Positions 48,730 to 55,893 of a stretch of 64,000 nt of DNA are shown piece by piece; position 1 is the stretch's first letter; each line of letters opens with the position of its first letter. The stretch covers positions 8,289,122 to 8,353,121 of the forward strand of contig NC_134030.1 in NCBI RefSeq assembly GCF_964204645.1, in the 5' to 3' direction. A model generated the notes under the pieces. The model searched no databases and had not been told where the DNA came from. It was given only the letters and a program-made list of their open reading frames with translations. Both the position numbers and the translations under genes were made by a program. Source of the stretch: Tubulanus polymorphus. Lineage: Eukaryota; Animalia; Nemertea.

Positions 48730-48781
48730 ACTATCCACACTGATCATGTGACACTAGTGACGCGGTCACTTCTTAGTTTGC
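48730..48781 (+). repeat. Split direct repeat A1 (left terminus)
   Basis: ACTATCCACACTGATCATGTGACACTAGTGACGCGGTCACTTCTTAGTTTGC, identical to 55636-55687. Confidence 0.95.
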
Positions 48782-48947
48782 TTTCGAAGCTATCGGACGT
48801 GTGTGGTCAGCTGTTTTGTGGTGAGTTTTGTCTCCTGCGTTTGCCGATTTTCTGTGGTTCCTTTCCGGTAGCATTTGGTATTTTTCTTTGGAACTTTGTT
48901 TGTGGTTTCCTCTTTAGTTTTGGTCCCCTTTTGCCTGGTTTGGAGAC

Positions 48948-49194
48948 TTTGGTGTAGTCATCTTGGATGAAACACTGGGTTTATTAGTTTTAGTGCAGTC
49001 ATTTTGGATGAAACACTGGAGTTTATTGATTTTAGTGTAGTCATTTCGGATGAAACACTGGTTTTTATTTATTTTTGGTGCGGTCATTTCGGATGAAACA
49101 CTGGTTTTGTTAGTTTTAGTGCAGTCATTTAGGATGAAGCACTAGGTTTGTTAATTTTGGTGCAGTCATTTCGGATGAAACACTGATTTTGATG
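48948..49194 (+). repeat. Tandem array of six 41-43 bp hairpin-forming units in the retroelement 5' leader
   Basis: Consensus TTTRGTGYAGTCATTTCGGATGAAACACTGG plus a T-rich linker. Units start at about 48948, 48989, 49031, 49074, 49115 and 49156. Confidence 0.92.
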
Positions 49195-49981
49195 TTTTGG
49201 GTTATACTGTACCGTGATTTTGGGTTTAAGCACGGGCAGATGGTCTTTTAGATTTTCTGGGATAAGTGCAGTGTTTTGGATGAAGCACGGGAGATGGATT
49301 GATAGTGATTTTATTGAGGCAAAATTCTCGGTCAGGTTAGAAGTACTAGGGTACTTTGGTACATTTTGACCGTCAATGACATTTAGGTTACAGTGCTACA
49401 TGCGTGATTGCTTTTGCCTTTATTGGGACGTGGGTAAATACTGTAAGTCACAGTGCGTGCATTTTGCTAGATTTATTTCATTCATAGGCGCATTTCCAAG
49501 GTCTGGATTTGGAATTCTTTTGTGGGATTTCATTGGCTTTTCAAAATTCGGTTTAATCTTACTGGGCGTGTAAAGGCAATCTGGTGACGTTTTACCTGGT
49601 CCTTGGTCTCGTTTTGTAGTTAGCGGTAGTGTTGGGTTAGCATCAAGTCCTGTTAGTCAAATCGCTTTTCAGATTTGAGGACAGTTTTGGAGCTCGGTGG
49701 TATTATTAGACTTGTTTGACTGTGTATCGTACAGATGAGTTAAGGTGAGTTTTTATTAGTGTATTACTGTCGTATTAGTTCTTGTTTAATTTAAGATGGT
49801 GGCTAAGGAAAAATTACGGCATGTGGCCGAAAATTTAACGTTTTTCTGGTCTGGTCACATGTATATATTTTGTTAAACTTTGTCGACGGTTGTTAGGATC
49901 AGTTTGCTAATACTTTTAAATTTTATTCCTGGTACGAGGCGGTAGTAATTTTGATGTTCTTTTCGCTTATCTGTTTCAGAG

Positions 49982-50374
49982 ATGGAACCGGTGGTTTTAA
50001 AATCGTCAGACGGTTTGAAAACGGTGGACATCATCCCCATGTTATTAAAATTAAGAGGGTTAGATTTGAACGTAGATCGGCCTACAGCCTTCGCTAGGTT
50101 CGAAAGGCTTAAGCCACTAGAAGCAGCACCGAGGAAGTATGTGGATGATGCGGTATTTTCTCTGACTGGTAAAAAGATGAATGATCTGTTAACGCTGGTG
50201 GACTGGGAGGAGACGGAAGGTCCGCTGCTAGCGCACCACTTGATAATTTTTGCTAACGAGAACGCGAACAAGCTCCCTCAGGTACCAAAGAAAAGGAAGT
50301 CTGTGCCCGCACCTAGTACAAGCACGGTCGGTGCGGAGAGTGATGCGGTAACCCCAGATGGGGTTTCTGAACCG
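49982..50374 (+). CDS. Retroelement leader coding exon (131 codons), predicted to splice onto the downstream ORFs
   Basis: ATG lies 2 nt after acceptor CTGTTTCAG (AG at 49978-49979). The exon ends at CCG|GTGAGT (phase 0). Read-through after the donor is T-rich and stops within 14 codons. Confidence 0.75.
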
Positions 50375-50849
50375 GTGAGTGTTTTTATTTTCTCAGTTTT
50401 ATATCTGTATTTGTAGCCCCCGGGTTTGGTCGGTAGGCCTGGACTGGGTAGATTTATTGGGAAATTAATAGACATTTGTTTAAAACATGTGTAGCTCTGT
50501 GCGTTTAAGGTTTATTGCTCTGGGCCTTGCACATACCAGGATTTAGTGGGTACAGAATGGGGATCTGTTTTGGTTAAGTTAGAGGATTTTTCGTTTCCTT
50601 TACTGGAGGAGAAAGTTTATAGAGATTAGGTTTTTTAAAAGACAGCTTCTGAAAATGTAAGACGCAAGATGGAATGTAAAGATAACCCATTAAGATGTAG
50701 GTAATGGTATGAAGGAGAAGCATGAAACATTTAGGATGATAGATTTGACTATAGATTGTTCGTTAACCGAAATCATGGCGATCTTTTAAACTATTTACTG
50801 CGAAGTCATGCTGATTAGTCTATATTTGTATTTATCTCGTGTGTTTCAG

Positions 50850-51392
50850 GACAAAAAATTGTTAAAGCGTCTGGAGGAACTCGAGAAGAAGGTTACACAT
50901 CCAGCTCGTTCAGTAGAGAGCGCTCTGATGCAGGTGAGGGCAGCGCTTCAAAGGCCGGGCTCTTTCTTTGATCCATACTTCCTTCTCGGTTGTATGGAAG
51001 GCTTGGTAGAGGTGGCAGCTGAAACCACAGATCCGAAAAAAGGGTATTTTGATTCTGTGCTGAAAAGTATCAAGAGAAATATCGATTCTCCAGACTTACC
51101 TGCTTTGTGTAGGCGTTTGATTGGCTACCCGGATGATGAAAAAGTGGCATCAGTGGAGGCAAAATGGGCTAAAAAGCCGCACACAAACAATTATTACCCA
51201 ACTTACGGCTATTGGGGTGGGTCGGGTGTAGGCAGGGGATATGTTGGGCGCCGAGGTTACGGTACAAGGAGAGCAGGGAGAAGTTCCAGGGGGAATTGTT
51301 TCTTATGCCGCAAAGAGGGTCATTTTGTTCGCGACTGTCCTGAGAATAAGCAACCACAAGTGGTAACGAAGACTGAAAGTGAGGTTGTCTAA
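50850..51392 (+). CDS. gag: Gag-like ORF with CCHC zinc knuckle
   Basis: CFLCRKEGHFVRDC knuckle preceded by an RG-rich tract. Starts at acceptor GTGTTTCAG|GAC in phase 0. Confidence 0.85.
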   Translation, partial: DKKLLKRLEELEKKVTHPARSVESALMQVRAALQRPGSFFDPYFLLGCMEGLVEVAAETTDPKKGYFDSVLKSIKRNIDSPDLPALCRRLIGYPDDEKVASVEAKWAKKPHTNNYYPTYGYWGGSGVGRGYVGRRGYGTRRAGRSSRGNCFLCRKEGHFVRDCPENKQPQVVTKTESEVV

Positions 51393-51638
51393 ATGAGTTA
51401 GAACTTAGAGTTAGATTGAATTTAGTTTTGGATGATACGTAATGTTATATTGTGTTGTTAAAGATGTTAAACAAGGTTATTTTCTCTCCTTTAAATTGAT
51501 CATATGTTGGATAATTCATTTTGTTATCGGTTGTTTGTGGTCGGTTGGCTTTGTTGTCACAGGCTATCTAAGTCTGTTGTCACGGCTTATGTCGTGCTGG
51601 CAACGGGGCTGGACTGATGGACCTTAGTGTCTTTTCAG

Positions 51639-53819
51639 GATTTTGTTCCGTTGAAGATACCTGTGTGTAAAGACGTGTTTTGGGTTGGTGCTAGAGGTTC
51701 ATCCGTCCAGTTACCGTTGCCTGAGGTCGTCTCAGCCGAGACCGTTTCGAAATCGGCGGACAAGTATAACAATTTGACAATTTTTGACCTGCCCCTCAGG
51801 GACCCGGAGAATTTCGTCGCAGGTGAACTGAGTCGCCATCTGGAGGAATGGGAATTTATTCTACGGCAGTCAGAGGATCCGTTGTCAGACACGATTTTAT
51901 CTTGGGTGCGAGATGGTGTTCATATCCCAGATTTCTTTAAGAGGTTTAAGGGTCAGTTTAAAGGCAAGACGTATGATTGTGATGCGCCCCCAAAAACGGT
52001 GTTCCCGAATTCTGGAAACTGCGAACAATTTGAAGATTTCATTTCTACAACATTAAAAGGTCGGGTGGCTAATGGATCACTCAAGGTCTGGGGAAAGGTT
52101 GGGGTCGATCCACCCCCGCATTTAGTTATGCCCTTGACGGTTGAACCCACGAAACCCAGAATGTGCCACGACGAACGATTTCTAAATCTATGGATTCGGG
52201 ACTCGCCTTTCCATTTGGAAACTTTGGTAAACGTACCTCGCATGCTACATAAAAGCGCGTTTATGACCTCTGTCGATGATAAAAGTGGTTACGACCACAT
52301 CAGGGTAACACCGGGAAGTGAGGTGTATTTGGGAATCAGCTGGAAAGGTTGGTATTACGTTTACACCGTTATTCCTTTTGGTTTTAAGGCCTCGGCCTAT
52401 ATATACCAGAACACTGGCTTGGTTGCAACGGGTTACCTTCGAGACCTAGGAGTACAGATAACTCAATACATTGATGACCGTTTAAATGGGGAGCTTTTAA
52501 GTTCCTCGGCTAGGGGTTTAGAATCCATCACAAAGGCTAGGTTAGCTCTATATATGACTGCCCAAGTTTTAACAAGACTAGGGTATTTTCTAGGCCTCCA
52601 TAAATGCGTCCTGGAACCGTGTCAGTTATTAAAGCATTTAGGCTTATTTGTTAACACTATAGAGGAACGTTTTGAGATCCCAAATGATAAGGTGGTAAAA
52701 TTTGCCATTTTAAGGGACAATATTTTATCGTCCGAATTCGTTAACATTAAAACGATTCAGCGGTTTGTGGGTAAGATCATATCCTTCTCGCTGGTTGTAC
52801 CAGCTGCGAAGCTTTATACAAGGGAGTCAAACTTAGCTATTTCTAAGGCATTCAGAAACTCGAGACTCATTAGGGTTGAGGGCAATCTCAGAACTGAGAT
52901 AGAGTACTGGAAGATAATTGAATGTTTGCCAAGGGTGGTAAGGTGGCGCCAAGAGTGGCATGTCAGAATTCAGATGTATACGGACGCATCCTCTTATAGA
53001 TGGGGTGGGATAGTCACGATTGGTGAGCAGAGGTTTGAGCCCTCCGATTATTGGCCACAGGAGCTGGTACAAAAACCCATTGTAATAAAGGAAACCTTGG
53101 CACTTAAAAACGTGTTAATGGTGGTTTCTGATAAAATTAGAGACAGTAGAGTAGACGCTTTTGTAGATAATAAAACTATGATTGCGGCATGGGTTGGTGA
53201 AGGTTCCAAATCACATGATCTGTCAGAAGCAATTAAGCTTTTGTTTGAACTAACAGCAGAACAAAATGTGTTGTTGAAATTGCATTATGTACCGTCAAAA
53301 GAGAATCTAGCAGACGCTCCCTCGCGAATTTTGCGAAAATCGGAATGTATGTTATCTCCGCGTATATGGCAGCACGTGCAACGTGAATATGGGGGTGAAA
53401 ACGGACACTCGGTTGATTTGATGGCCCTTGATTCGAACGTAATGGTAGATTTGTCAGGCTCTCCACTACGACATTTTACGCCAACGCCATCTACTGATTC
53501 TAGTGGTGTAGATCTGTTCGCACAAAATCTATGCGACGAGGTTAATCCATATGTGTTTCCGCCAATTTCTAAGATACCGGCGGTTTTACGATTCTTGGCA
53601 GACGCAGTCAAAGAAGCATCTATCGTCATTCCAGAAATCTTTCCGAGGCCATTCTGGTGGCCTTTGGTAACCTCTCGTGCATCCAAACGTCGCCTGCTTG
53701 GCAAAAAGGGAGATGTGGGTGTTTTGAAATATCCGACTAAAAAAGGTTTTGTGGAGGATACAGTAGGCATACCGTGGGATCTGTTTGTTTATAGGATAGA
53801 TTTTGATAGATTAGATTGA
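51639..53819 (+). CDS. pol: Reverse transcriptase - RNase H - methyltransferase-like ORF of the DIRS-type element
   Basis: RT motifs DDKSGYDHI, VIPFGFKAS, QYIDD. RNase H motifs YTDAS, IKETLA, FVDNK, YVPSKENLADAPSR. MT-like motifs VDLMA...GVDLFAQ...YVFPP...PFWWP. Uninterrupted frame opened by acceptor CTTTTCAG|GAT. Confidence 0.93.
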   Translation, partial: DFVPLKIPVCKDVFWVGARGSSVQLPLPEVVSAETVSKSADKYNNLTIFDLPLRDPENFVAGELSRHLEEWEFILRQSEDPLSDTILSWVRDGVHIPDFFKRFKGQFKGKTYDCDAPPKTVFPNSGNCEQFEDFISTTLKGRVANGSLKVWGKVGVDPPPHLVMPLTVEPTKPRMCHDERFLNLWIRDSPFHLETLVNVPRMLHKSAFMTSVDDKSGYDHIRVTPGSEVYLGISWKGWYYVYTVIPFGFKASAYIYQNTGLVATGYLRDLGVQITQYIDDRLNGELLSSSARGLESITKARLALYMTAQVLTRLGYFLGLHKCVLEPCQLLKHLGLFVNTIEERFEIPNDKVVKFAILRDNILSSEFVNIKTIQRFVGKIISFSLVVPAAKLYTRESNLAISKAFRNSRLIRVEGNLRTEIEYWKIIECLPRVVRWRQEWHVRIQMYTDASSYRWGGIVTIGEQRFEPSDYWPQELVQKPIVIKETLALKNVLMVVSDKIRDSRVDAFVDNKTMIAAWVGEGSKSHDLSEAIKLLFELTAEQNVLLKLHYVPSKENLADAPSRILRKSECMLSPRIWQHVQREYGGENGHSVDLMALDSNVMVDLSGSPLRHFTPTPSTDSSGVDLFAQNLCDEVNPYVFPPISKIPAVLRFLADAVKEASIVIPEIFPRPFWWPLVTSRASKRRLLGKKGDVGVLKYPTKKGFVEDTVGIPWDLFVYRIDFDRLD

Positions 53820-54006
53820 AAGATTAAATTGACATGTTTTCCTGAGCGATAACATGGTGTTGCGTAACGGTGGTCTTTATTTTCTACTCTGATCTATGCA
53901 CGGTAAAATCCGGATGCATAACTCTGCTTTTACGTTAATAAACGTTTTGTCTTTTCTGATATACCTCGTTTATTATGGTTCTTTTAAGATCTGTCATATT
54001 TTACAG

Positions 54007-55346
54007 GATCTGTCTCTGCATCACGAGAACCATTGTGCGGACTGTGGACATCGCTCGCGACAGCACTCAAATTTCTGCTACAATTGTGGTTCAGAGTTAA
54101 GCAATGCGGATGGCGAGAACGGTACATTGCTAGCCTTACCATTAAAAGATTTGGATGCCCGGTTAAATTCTATGTCAGTGAGTGAGCGCAACTCTGTTTA
54201 TGGCCGAAAGAAGTCAAAACTGGAAGAAGATTTGGTCTTGTTCCTCAGGTCACTGCGCCCATCGAGATCCTTGTTGACGGCATCACCTAGGGATATCTGT
54301 AGGTTCATGGTATTCAGGGATGCTCGGGGTAAAACAGTAGTACACTCTTTAACCTGTCCGGTACGAGGTTGGAAAGCAGTCTCGAAGGCCTCACCAAGGA
54401 CCGGTGGTTGTTTATGCCCCAAAAGACTGGCAGCCGGAACGGTCGATTCCTATCTGGGTCAGATAAGGGCAATATTTAACTCGATTGGTAAAATTGGCTG
54501 TTGGCATCCCGAGCGCGGAACTGGGAATCCTACCATATCAGAAGAGGTAAAACAATACCTGAGAGTGACTAAGAAGGAGCAATCGGTGGCTATGATCACC
54601 CCTAAACAAGCCGTCCCAATGTACCTTAGCAAATTGACGGCAATGATTCTCTCTATTGATAAACGCTTGGCTGTCCCAGATTTACCCGCGGTAACGGAGT
54701 ATATTTTAGCAAGGGACCAGGCTTTCTTCAAACTTGATTTTCTAACAGGACATAGGGCGGCAGACTTAGGTCGGTTTTTGACAGATGGGATCTCTCAGAG
54801 TGACGATGGAAGGGTAATCATTTTAAATCTAACGTTCGGGAAAACACTGCGGGATGGTTCGGTTTTGACATCCGTAGTTACTCGTTTTAACAACCCGGTT
54901 CTGTGCCCGGTTTTGGCGATTGAAAGGTATTTTGCTGTTGTAAAGGCGCTTGGAGTTGACCTTGGGGGGGGGGTTACTTATTCCGGATAACGAATAAAGA
55001 GGGCGCTATCGTTAATAACGGACTCGACTCGAATGCGGTGGGAAGCCGTTTGAAAACTTACCTAAAAGAAATTTGTATGTATGACGGTGAGACCCCGCAT
55101 AGTTTTAGGGTTGGATGCTCCGTTATGTTGGCTTCTTTGGGCCATACATCTAAAGAGGTGACTTCTTATATTGGTTGGAAGCATCAGTCCATGGCAAAGC
55201 ATTACACCAAACATGCTTGTGTGATGCAGGGTAAAGTCTCTGACTCTCTCGGTCAGGCTATGGGACAGTTAACTGATAAAAGTGTAGAATCATATCGCCT
55301 GAATAATGCTACAAGCGGGTTTAAACCAATGTTTTCATCCATGTAG
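54007..55346 (+). CDS. Tyrosine recombinase with N-terminal zinc ribbon and ALOG domain; frameshifted at a G10 run (54964-54973)
   Basis: CADC..FCYNC zinc ribbon. ALOG-like GKTVVH..C...CLCPKRLAAGTVDSYLGQIRAIF...GNP...EVKQYLR. Catalytic residues in GHRAADL, FGKT, HSFR, IGW and KHY. Changing frame at the G-run restores GYLFR and joins ORF 55038-55346. Confidence 0.88.
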
Positions 55347-55569
55347 GTTCTACGTACGCCAATTTATATCGATAAGAAACTAGACGCTAATACGAATTTT
55401 GTATATTAATATACCCGATTTCTAAGGCGGGTCTAAATAAATCGACTGCGGATGCATATTCTGTCTTCTGATTTTTGGCCTCGTTTCACTCGGCCTAGTA
55501 TAGTTGGGGTTTGGGTGTAGTTGTGGAAAGGTTTTTAGTATTTGTTGTGGTTATCAGTAAGGGGTTGGG

Positions 55570-55687
55570 TCGTTTTTTATCCCCAATCACTACATAACCG
55601 CGGAACGAGAAACCACCGATCAGTGTGGATATTATACTATCCACACTGATCATGTGACACTAGTGACGCGGTCACTTCTTAGTTTGC
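55570..55687 (+). repeat. Internal B1-A2 junction of the split direct repeats, containing a 14-6-14 palindrome (55618-55651)
   Basis: GATCAGTGTGGATA-TTATAC-TATCCACACTGATC. Confidence 0.95.
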
Positions 55688-55823
55688 GGAAGATGGGGAG
55701 TCGAGTGTGACAGGTGTGCCTTGTACAGTGGAGGGAATGGGCCAATGAAATACAGGATGGGTTAAGATATTTAAAAAAAAAAAAAAAAAAATACCCAGCG
55801 TATGTGGCTACTTGTTCCGGGTT

Positions 55824-55893
55824 TCGTTTTTTATCCCCAATCACTACATAACCGCGGAACGAGAAACCACCGATCAGTGTGGATATTATACTA
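55824..55893 (+). repeat. Split direct repeat B2 (right terminus)
   Basis: 70 bp identical to 55570-55639. Confidence 0.95.

Follow-up and report, generated by a model that had tools for sequence, protein, structure and literature searches.

The window analyzed here, a stretch of 64,000 nucleotides of contig NC_134030.1 (positions 8,289,122 to 8,353,121, forward strand) of the ribbon worm Tubulanus polymorphus (assembly GCF_964204645.1), contains a complete 7,164-bp retrotransposon copy on the plus strand at 48730-55893, which begins with ACTATCCACACTG and ends with GTGGATATTATACTA. About eight copies of the element, 98-99% alike, were detected in the genome, and seven full copies share exactly these ends and have unrelated flanks that share no duplicated bases, indicating the absence of a target-site duplication. 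A repeat search of the window revealed split direct repeats: the left terminal repeat (A1, 48730-48781) is identical over 52 nt to 55636-55687 (A2), and the right terminal repeat (B2, 55824-55893) is identical over 70 nt to 55570-55639 (B1), with B1 overlapping A2 by ACTA at the internal junction (55570-55687), which is the presumed circle junction, while the tips also carry a 14-nt inverted motif, TATCCACACTGATC and GATCAGTGTGGATA. An array of about 42-nt tandem repeats was observed in the 5' non-coding region (48948-49184). Three non-overlapping genes follow a leader exon: the Gag ORF (50850-51392, 180 codons) with a CCHC zinc knuckle found by Pfam (zf-CCHC), the Pol ORF (51639-53819, 726 codons), and the YR (tyrosine-recombinase) gene (54007-55346) encoding a zinc ribbon, an ALOG domain and a tyrosine-recombinase catalytic domain. 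The reverse transcriptase was recognized by Pfam RVT_1 (E 1.5e-7), with Ty3 RT as the best solved relative and 466 homologues at E<=1e-20, whereas the C-terminal 270 or so residues of Pol, where a methyltransferase-like domain would follow RT/RNase H in the PAT-like group, align with relatives over 92-100% of the query but match no Pfam family even at E 5. Pfam searches of the window pieces and of the open 445-codon YR ORF of another copy returned DZR (E 4e-4) and ALOG_dom (E 2e-20), with Phage_integrase (E 1.4e-7) on the open ORF, as the YR ORF of the window copy is split at about 54967 by two extra G in a G run (a +2 frameshift), a change private to this copy. The element thus belongs to the DIRS order, with a tyrosine recombinase in place of a DDE integrase, and is PAT-like and ALOG-type, and it is not DIRS1-like sensu stricto because its terminal repeats are direct and its ORFs do not overlap, being separated by spacers of 246 and 187 nt.

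The original prediction, which described a YR retrotransposon at 49673-54010 with one leader exon and three phase-0 acceptors, holds as an observation, since every motif was found where it had been placed (a slash marks the splice boundary below). The leader exon (49980-50374) has its ATG at 49982 and 131 codons up to the donor CCG/GTGAGT at 50374/50375 in phase 0, and the acceptors TTTCAG/GAC (50850), TTTTCAG/GAT (51639) and TTTACAG/GAT (54007) each lie in phase 0 of the ORF they open. The first Met of the Pol ORF is at about codon 163, and eight in-frame stops lie in the gag-pol spacer (51393-51638), the 3' half of which (about 51505-51638) is unusually conserved in comparison with the diverged copy L010; the pol-YR spacer (53820-54006) holds AATAAA at 53938-53943 and a nominal ATG at 53896. 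The pattern is more than chance, although a strict acceptor rule is met about once per 1,000 nt in the window and only 51639 of the three sites passes it; stronger evidence is that the same layout recurs in families with only 30-45% protein identity. Three points needed correction: the Asp codon after each acceptor is not conserved in relatives, where only a G at +1 is common; the supposed extra exon at 49673-49744 has a donor that is used in RNA, but its acceptor at 49672/49673 is not supported as an exon start; and the YR ORF is frameshifted in this copy, as described above.

Two of the predicted junctions were seen in RNA-like contigs of one run, X4. Contigs 25 and 26 of X4 are colinear with the element over 49477-49648 and 49619-49738, showing a non-coding first exon (49477-49744) of undefined 5' end that runs on upstream of 49673 and ends at the donor AAG/GTGAGT (49744/49745). 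The joint from 49738 to 49974 in contig 26 skips 235 nt, the same length as intron 1 (49745-49979, GT..AG), which ends 2 nt before the ATG, and the six-base shift is explained by a copy variant, TTTAAG against TTTCAG, so that the junction is 49744/49980; X4 depth is zero inside this intron, and an intron ending right at the ATG is also present in the compared sequences L020, L021, L022, L023 and L024. Intron 2 (50375-50849), between the leader and gag, is skipped in X4 contig 28, where the GT..AG joint is given as 50373>50849 with the cut 1 nt further right (equal to 50374/50850), and X4 depth is zero over 50445-50842. The RefSeq protein XP_074653461.1 of Tubulanus polymorphus is exactly the 311-aa leader+Gag product, although this model probably rests on the same RNA run as X4 and is therefore not independent. 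No X4 contig covers either intron or either spacer, while the DNA-like runs X1-X3 of the same study cover them continuously: contig 28 is continuous over 50849-51349, contig 29 covers 51674-53950, X4 depth is zero over 51440-51638 and no contig lies over 53951-54001. All eight genomic copies keep the introns, and no processed copy is among the 16 matches, as expected if unspliced RNA is the template; the sequence L038 looked like a processed copy without gag, but its 551-nt deletion is not bounded by GT..AG, so it is an ordinary deletion derivative. Variation among the seven full copies is even across exons, introns and codon positions (2-5% variable columns; 32 synonymous against 75 non-synonymous) and says nothing about splice-site constraint.

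The leader exon encodes a conserved domain of about 100 aa, predicted to be helical (AlphaFold2 pLDDT 78-95 over residues 1-100), followed by a predicted disordered linker, with homologues in molluscs and nemerteans. A Foldseek search of the leader+Gag model against the PDB returned nothing at E<=0.001, and a complex prediction on two copies of the shared head (residues 1-165 of P0001, the leader+Gag protein) gave no verdict and is evidence neither for nor against binding. A 3,962-aa hit to the leader (P0002) was discarded as a spurious sum of weak repeat matches.

No leader-to-Pol (50374>51639) or leader-to-YR (50374>54007) junction was seen among the X4 contigs, and the interpretation offered in the original prediction, namely that the leader donor chooses directly among the three acceptors and that Gag, Pol and YR would share only the 131-aa leader, is only partly supported. 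All these sites are in phase 0, so that each join would be in frame, and the leader donor matches the consensus and is used for Gag. However, in every relative whose exons could be mapped, with the exons searched one by one, Pol and YR are joined to a second donor inside the gag exon. Lineus XP_064641919.1 and Argopecten XP_069129670.1 have three exons (leader, the first 39 or 31 gag codons, and Pol), with all junctions GT..AG and in phase 0 and with the Gag ORF running on past the donor; Magallana gigas XP_065932254.1, four further M. gigas models (P0200, P0202, P0203 and P0204) and a Crassostrea angulata model (P0201) comprise the leader, the start of gag ('gagN') and YR; and the oyster RNA contigs L018/L019 show the Gag form. 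Some of these RefSeq models, for which the underlying evidence lines were not seen, may be projections: the Ostrea edulis model needs a non-canonical last junction and was not counted. In the window the candidate internal donor is CAG/GTGAGG at 50933/50934 in phase 0, which closes the first 28 codons of the gag exon (50850-50933). The homologous donor sits just before V(R/K) in the seven families examined, three of them in this genome, as AG/GTRARR (CAG/GTGAGG, AAG/GTGAGA, CAG/GTAAGA, CAG/GTGAGG, AAG/GTGAGG, AAG/GTAAAG and AAG/GTGAAG), and only Val GTR, Arg AGR and a preceding NAG codon are ever used, which points to constraint at synonymous sites; in a cnidarian and a hemichordate family the homologous site is not a good donor. 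Such a conserved donor would have no role under the direct three-way choice from the leader, which is considered unlikely.

Pyrimidine-rich AG sites in phase 0 open Pol and YR in the Tubulanus, Lineus, Argopecten, oyster and L020 families, and also in the cnidarian and the hemichordate family; the acceptors homologous to 51639 are used in the Lineus and Argopecten models and that homologous to 54007 in the oyster models. In addition, X4 contig 30 joins a host exon at C9:11597127 on the minus strand, which ends CCG/GTAAGT, to the YR exon at about 54002-54007, which suggests, without the base at 54005 that would prove the splice, that the YR acceptor works in vivo. No contig shows 50933>51639 or 50933>54007, contig 28 crosses 50933 without a break, contig 29 starts only at 51674 and the YR contig is joined to a host exon rather than to the element, so that element-derived Pol and YR mRNAs were rare or absent in this one sample, bearing in mind that contigs drop rare forms. 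This leaves the possibility that only Gag depends on splicing and that Pol and YR are translated by internal or re-initiation, from separate transcripts or from the YR ATG at 53896, with the AG sites being incidental; in Lineus the YR exon starts with ATG, RefSeq annotates an Argopecten YR as a separate gene, and AATAAA at 53938 lies next to the end of the Pol contig. Against this stand the lack of an ATG for about 163 codons of Pol with eight stops upstream, the YR ORF of L020, which has no early ATG and opens 2 codons before the AG, the conservation of the donor and of the acceptor-like sites across families, and the absence of both spacers from the RNA contigs, and this reading also seems unlikely. 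A classic Gag-Pol fusion, made by removing the gag stop and the spacer from a donor near the 3' end of gag (GTG/GTAACG at 51362/51363, phase 0) to 51639, would be in frame and agrees with the lack of X4 contigs over 51350-51673, but it appears even less likely, as the donor is weak, one copy has GTTACG, no equivalent donor exists in L020, where the only nearby GT would cut the zinc knuckle, the stronger nearby site AAA/GTGAGG at 51378/51379 is in phase 1 and would run into a stop after about 10 codons, and the models of relatives do not use a gag-3' donor. Readthrough or frameshift from gag into pol was rejected because of the eight stops between them, and the relative frames of gag and pol also differ between families, being the same in the window but different in L020.

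Taken together, the element is a young PAT-like, ALOG-type YR retrotransposon whose single sense transcript appears to be handled much like a retroviral RNA, and three-way splicing with a shared N-terminus is plausible and held with moderate confidence, with the branch point probably at the in-gag donor and not at the leader donor. In this view, unspliced RNA is the template for new copies; removal of the 5'UTR intron and the leader-gag intron gives the Gag mRNA encoding the leader+Gag protein; and the weaker in-gag donor, when used, is joined either to the Pol acceptor (51639) or to the YR acceptor (54007), which would give leader+28 Gag residues+Pol and leader+28 Gag residues+YR. Of these steps, the two introns and the Gag message were directly demonstrated, whereas the template role of unspliced RNA is inferred, the use of the in-gag donor in this element and the Pol and YR fusions are inferred by homology with annotated products of relatives, in which the shared module is the leader plus the first 31-39 Gag codons, and the control of stoichiometry put forward in the original prediction also remains inference. 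The choice would be whether the in-gag donor is used and which acceptor it takes, which would set Gag > Pol > YR, and the shared head may bring Pol and YR to Gag assemblies, although this last point is speculation.

How DIRS/PAT elements express Pol and the recombinase is poorly understood, as the ORFs often lack start codons. If the scheme holds, a splicing programme with a shared protein head would explain expression and stoichiometry for a family widespread in marine invertebrates, would give a concrete co-assembly hypothesis, would show introns being kept, moved and lost within a retrotransposon lineage, and would warn annotators that copies judged dead from ORF scans may be intact and that some 'uncharacterized protein isoform X1/X2' entries in RefSeq are products of this element family. 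In a broader reading, about as likely as not, a clade of ALOG-type PAT-like retrotransposons in nemerteans and molluscs uses one conserved 5' splice site inside gag to make both the reverse transcriptase and the tyrosine recombinase as fusions to a Gag-derived head (the leader domain plus about 30 Gag residues), which would be a splicing-based equivalent of Gag-Pol extended to the recombinase and would mean that many 'disrupted' metazoan copies are intact, intron-bearing elements. No account of splicing in DIRS, PAT or Ngaro elements, and no description of such a scheme for YR retroelements, was found in the literature searched, which left out most subscription papers, including those of Goodwin & Poulter.

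The closest known elements are the ALOG-type DIRS1/PAT-like retrotransposons of marine animals and Ectocarpus (Iyer & Aravind 2012, PMC3537659; PAT superfamily as defined in PMC3266345), which share the order of Gag, RT-containing Pol and a YR with zinc ribbon, ALOG and catalytic domain, the split direct repeats, the lack of target duplication and hosts among marine invertebrates. Those papers describe ORFs only; PMC3537659 contains neither 'intron' nor any word beginning with 'splic' and took the metazoan copies to be inactive because their ORFs looked disrupted, whereas here two introns are shown in RNA, and a conserved leader exon and an in-gag donor are described. The Ty1/Copia shGAG mRNA made by alternative splicing (PMC5580714) and the BARE Gag RNA pool (PMC3735527) similarly represent a retrotransposon using splicing to set the excess of Gag over enzymes while unspliced RNA is kept as the template, but in copia and BARE splicing makes the Gag-only message and Pol comes from unspliced RNA, while here the default spliced form makes Gag and further splicing is proposed to make Pol and a recombinase, each of which would be fused to an N-terminal piece of Gag. 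Foamy-virus Pol and retroviral Env are made from spliced subgenomic mRNAs, in which downstream genes are reached through a shared 5' donor and gene-specific acceptors and introns are retained in the genome, although foamy Pol and Env are not known to be fused to a Gag-derived protein head, and the present element is of a different class that uses a tyrosine recombinase rather than an integrase. In retroviral and Ty Gag-Pol fusions made by frameshift or readthrough, Pol likewise carries Gag-derived N-terminal sequence and is made in smaller amounts than Gag, as it would be here, whereas in the present element the fusion would arise by splicing, would carry only about 159 N-terminal residues, and a second fusion of the same kind would exist for the recombinase.

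The stretch contains one copy of a 7,164-bp retrotransposon of the ribbon worm Tubulanus polymorphus at 48730-55893, the ends of which are fixed by seven full copies that share them exactly and have unrelated flanks, so that there is no target duplication. The terminal sequences are split direct repeats, in which 48730-48781 equals 55636-55687 and 55570-55639 equals 55824-55893, and the two overlap by ACTA at the internal junction; an A run of variable length (8-19 A in the different copies) lies at 55773-55793, between the internal repeat junction and the right terminal repeat. An array of about 42-nt tandem repeats (TGCAGTCATTTCGGATGAAACACT...) lies at 48948-49184 in the 5' non-coding part and is present in all copies, where it could be a promoter or enhancer, or a binding-site array. 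The plus strand carries, in order, a 131-codon ATG-initiated ORF with no Pfam match (the leader), a Gag ORF with a CCHC knuckle, a 726-codon Pol ORF with RVT_1, and a YR gene with zinc ribbon, ALOG and Phage_integrase domains, which in this copy is split by two extra G at about 54967 that are lacking in the other copies and in all four sequencing runs. The element belongs to the ALOG-type DIRS/PAT-like class described by Iyer & Aravind (PMC3537659), and homologues occur in molluscs, nemerteans, cnidarians, hemichordates and amphioxus. One copy of this family, at L008/L009 (G000:C3:16455803-16464150), is interrupted inside the leader region by about 2.7 kb of foreign DNA.

The observation behind the original prediction was confirmed, as the leader donor at 50374 and the acceptors before Gag (50850), Pol (51639) and YR (54007) are all present and in phase 0. 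The Pol ORF has no Met for about 163 codons, and eight stops in its frame separate it from gag. The 130 nt or so just upstream of the Pol acceptor (51505-51638) are much better conserved between this family and a diverged, internally deleted copy (L010, 80-89% identity to this element across its matched segments) than the first half of the spacer or the gag end; this stretch holds a repeated GTTGTCAC motif and a CTGAT branch-point-like site, and could be a splicing-control or other cis-acting RNA element.

Transcription was assessed on contigs from four runs of one study (X1-X4), only one of which is RNA-like. The X1-X3 contigs cover the element continuously, as DNA would, and contigs of X2 and X3 break at 51030-51033, 52075-52078 and 52676-52679 and continue with the same 13 letters (GATGGACGAACCT) followed by unrelated sequence, the site at 51030-51033 reading GATC, which looks like a proximity-ligation (Hi-C-type) linker and marks these runs as DNA libraries, not RNA. 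X4 behaves as RNA, with no contig covering either intron or either spacer, and it carries two joints: the first, 49738>49974, skips 235 nt, which is the length of the predicted intron 49745-49979, the six-base shift being explained by the copy variant TTTAAG aligning to TTTCAG; the second is given as 50373>50849, GT..AG with the cut 1 nt further right, which is exactly 50374|50850. The 5'UTR intron and the leader-Gag intron are thus real, and the Gag contig runs on unbroken to 51349. RefSeq XP_074653461.1 is exactly leader+Gag (311 aa), although it probably rests on the same RNA data. The RNA is colinear upstream of 49673, so the acceptor at 49672|49673, which had been proposed to open an extra non-coding exon, is not supported.

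In these contigs no joint was seen from 50374, or from anywhere else in the element, to 51639 or 54007. Splicing for Gag only, with Pol and YR made by other means, would be one alternative, and a Gag-Pol fusion from a weak donor at 51362|51363 another, but the former is considered unlikely and the latter still less likely. The Pol contig begins at 51674 with no loose end and finishes at 53950, where AATAAA (53938-53943) sits 7 nt before its end, inside the pol-YR spacer, which may be a polyadenylation site for a Pol message, although no poly(A) loose end was reported. The YR contig (X4 record 30, 1,998 nt, concerning the region 54002-55400) begins at 54002 and carries 127 upstream letters, which match a single place in the genome, namely the first coding exon (MSHSNPTSPP...NTFQIP) of a FERM-like host gene on another chromosome (L013; G000:C9:11597127-11597234, minus strand), ending ATACCG|GTAAGT in phase 0; no element lies within 40 kb downstream of that exon in the assembly. 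The simplest reading is an insertion present in the RNA individual, probably polymorphic and trapping the host exon, which would be spliced in frame to the YR acceptor at 54007, a reading that requires a C at 54005 in the contig, a base the output did not show. If it is right, the acceptor works in vivo, and most YR-region RNA in this sample would have come from the chimaera, not from the element's own mRNA.

A search with the leader alone against 1.8 billion representatives found homologues at 32-36% identity, and the Pol and YR homologues were then scanned with a leader profile. The leader was found fused to Pol in the RefSeq proteins of Lineus longissimus (XP_064641919.1) and Argopecten irradians (XP_069129670.1), and fused to YR in Magallana gigas (XP_065932254.1 and four further models), Crassostrea angulata and Ostrea edulis. 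Mapping of these annotated proteins onto their loci gave leader exon, first 39 or 31 codons of the Gag ORF, and Pol in Lineus and Argopecten, and leader (two exons), 32 Gag codons and YR in M. gigas, with every junction GT..AG and phase 0, whereas the Ostrea model needs a non-canonical junction and was discounted. In the Lineus and Argopecten loci the Gag ORF was read on past the donor to its CCHC knuckle, and oyster RNA contigs (L018/L019) show the Gag form, with the leader introns removed and the in-gag donor unused.

The homologous donor in the window is CAG|GTGAGG at 50933|50934, in phase 0, 28 codons into the gag exon and just before VRAALQRP. The same site is present in two other Tubulanus families (AAG|GTGAGA, CAG|GTAAGA), in the family of locus L020, and in Lineus, Argopecten and oysters. 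Across these seven families the Val codon is always GTR, the Arg codon always AGR and the preceding codon always ends in AG, while protein identity in this region is low, which fits selection on the splice signal itself, although the families are related and no formal probability is given. Pyrimidine-rich AG sites in phase 0 open Pol and YR in all these families, and also in a cnidarian and a hemichordate family, but in those two distant families the donor site itself is not conserved. Intron positions also move, as the other Tubulanus families and the oysters have an intron inside the leader, and the other Tubulanus families have none between leader and gag. The genome holds at least two such further decayed families, L037 (G000:C1:15938500-15947500) and L039 (C7:6488500-6497500) with L038 (C2:10839500-10849000), whose RT regions are about 70% identical to each other in DNA and which have an intron inside the leader and none between leader and gag, so that intron positions differ between sister families; L038 is a gag-deleted derivative of the L039 family (551-nt deletion, not GT..AG) and is present as two adjacent partial units.

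The interpretation offered in the original prediction, in which the leader donor is joined directly to one of three acceptors, was therefore only partly supported, and that direct scheme is considered unlikely. The mechanism favored here, with moderate confidence, is that unspliced RNA is the template, as all eight copies keep every intron and no processed copy was among the matches; that the default spliced RNA makes leader+Gag; and that occasional use of the in-gag donor, joined to 51639 or to 54007, makes leader+28 residues+Pol or leader+28 residues+YR. Of these steps only the leader+Gag message was demonstrated, whereas the template role of unspliced RNA and the Pol and YR fusions are inferred. 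The contig depths of about 85, 30 and 19 for Gag, Pol and YR go in the expected direction, but they are not a valid measure. The shared head is predicted to consist of a confidently folded helical domain of about 100 aa, a disordered linker and a helix; its role in co-assembly is a guess, and a complex prediction gave no verdict.

No account of splicing in DIRS, PAT or Ngaro elements was found in the literature searched, which did not extend to the classic subscription papers, and introns are not mentioned in PMC3537659, whereas RefSeq already holds the isoforms as 'uncharacterized proteins'. Splicing-based control of Gag against Pol is known for Ty1/Copia (PMC5580714) and for BARE (PMC3735527); foamy viruses likewise employ it.
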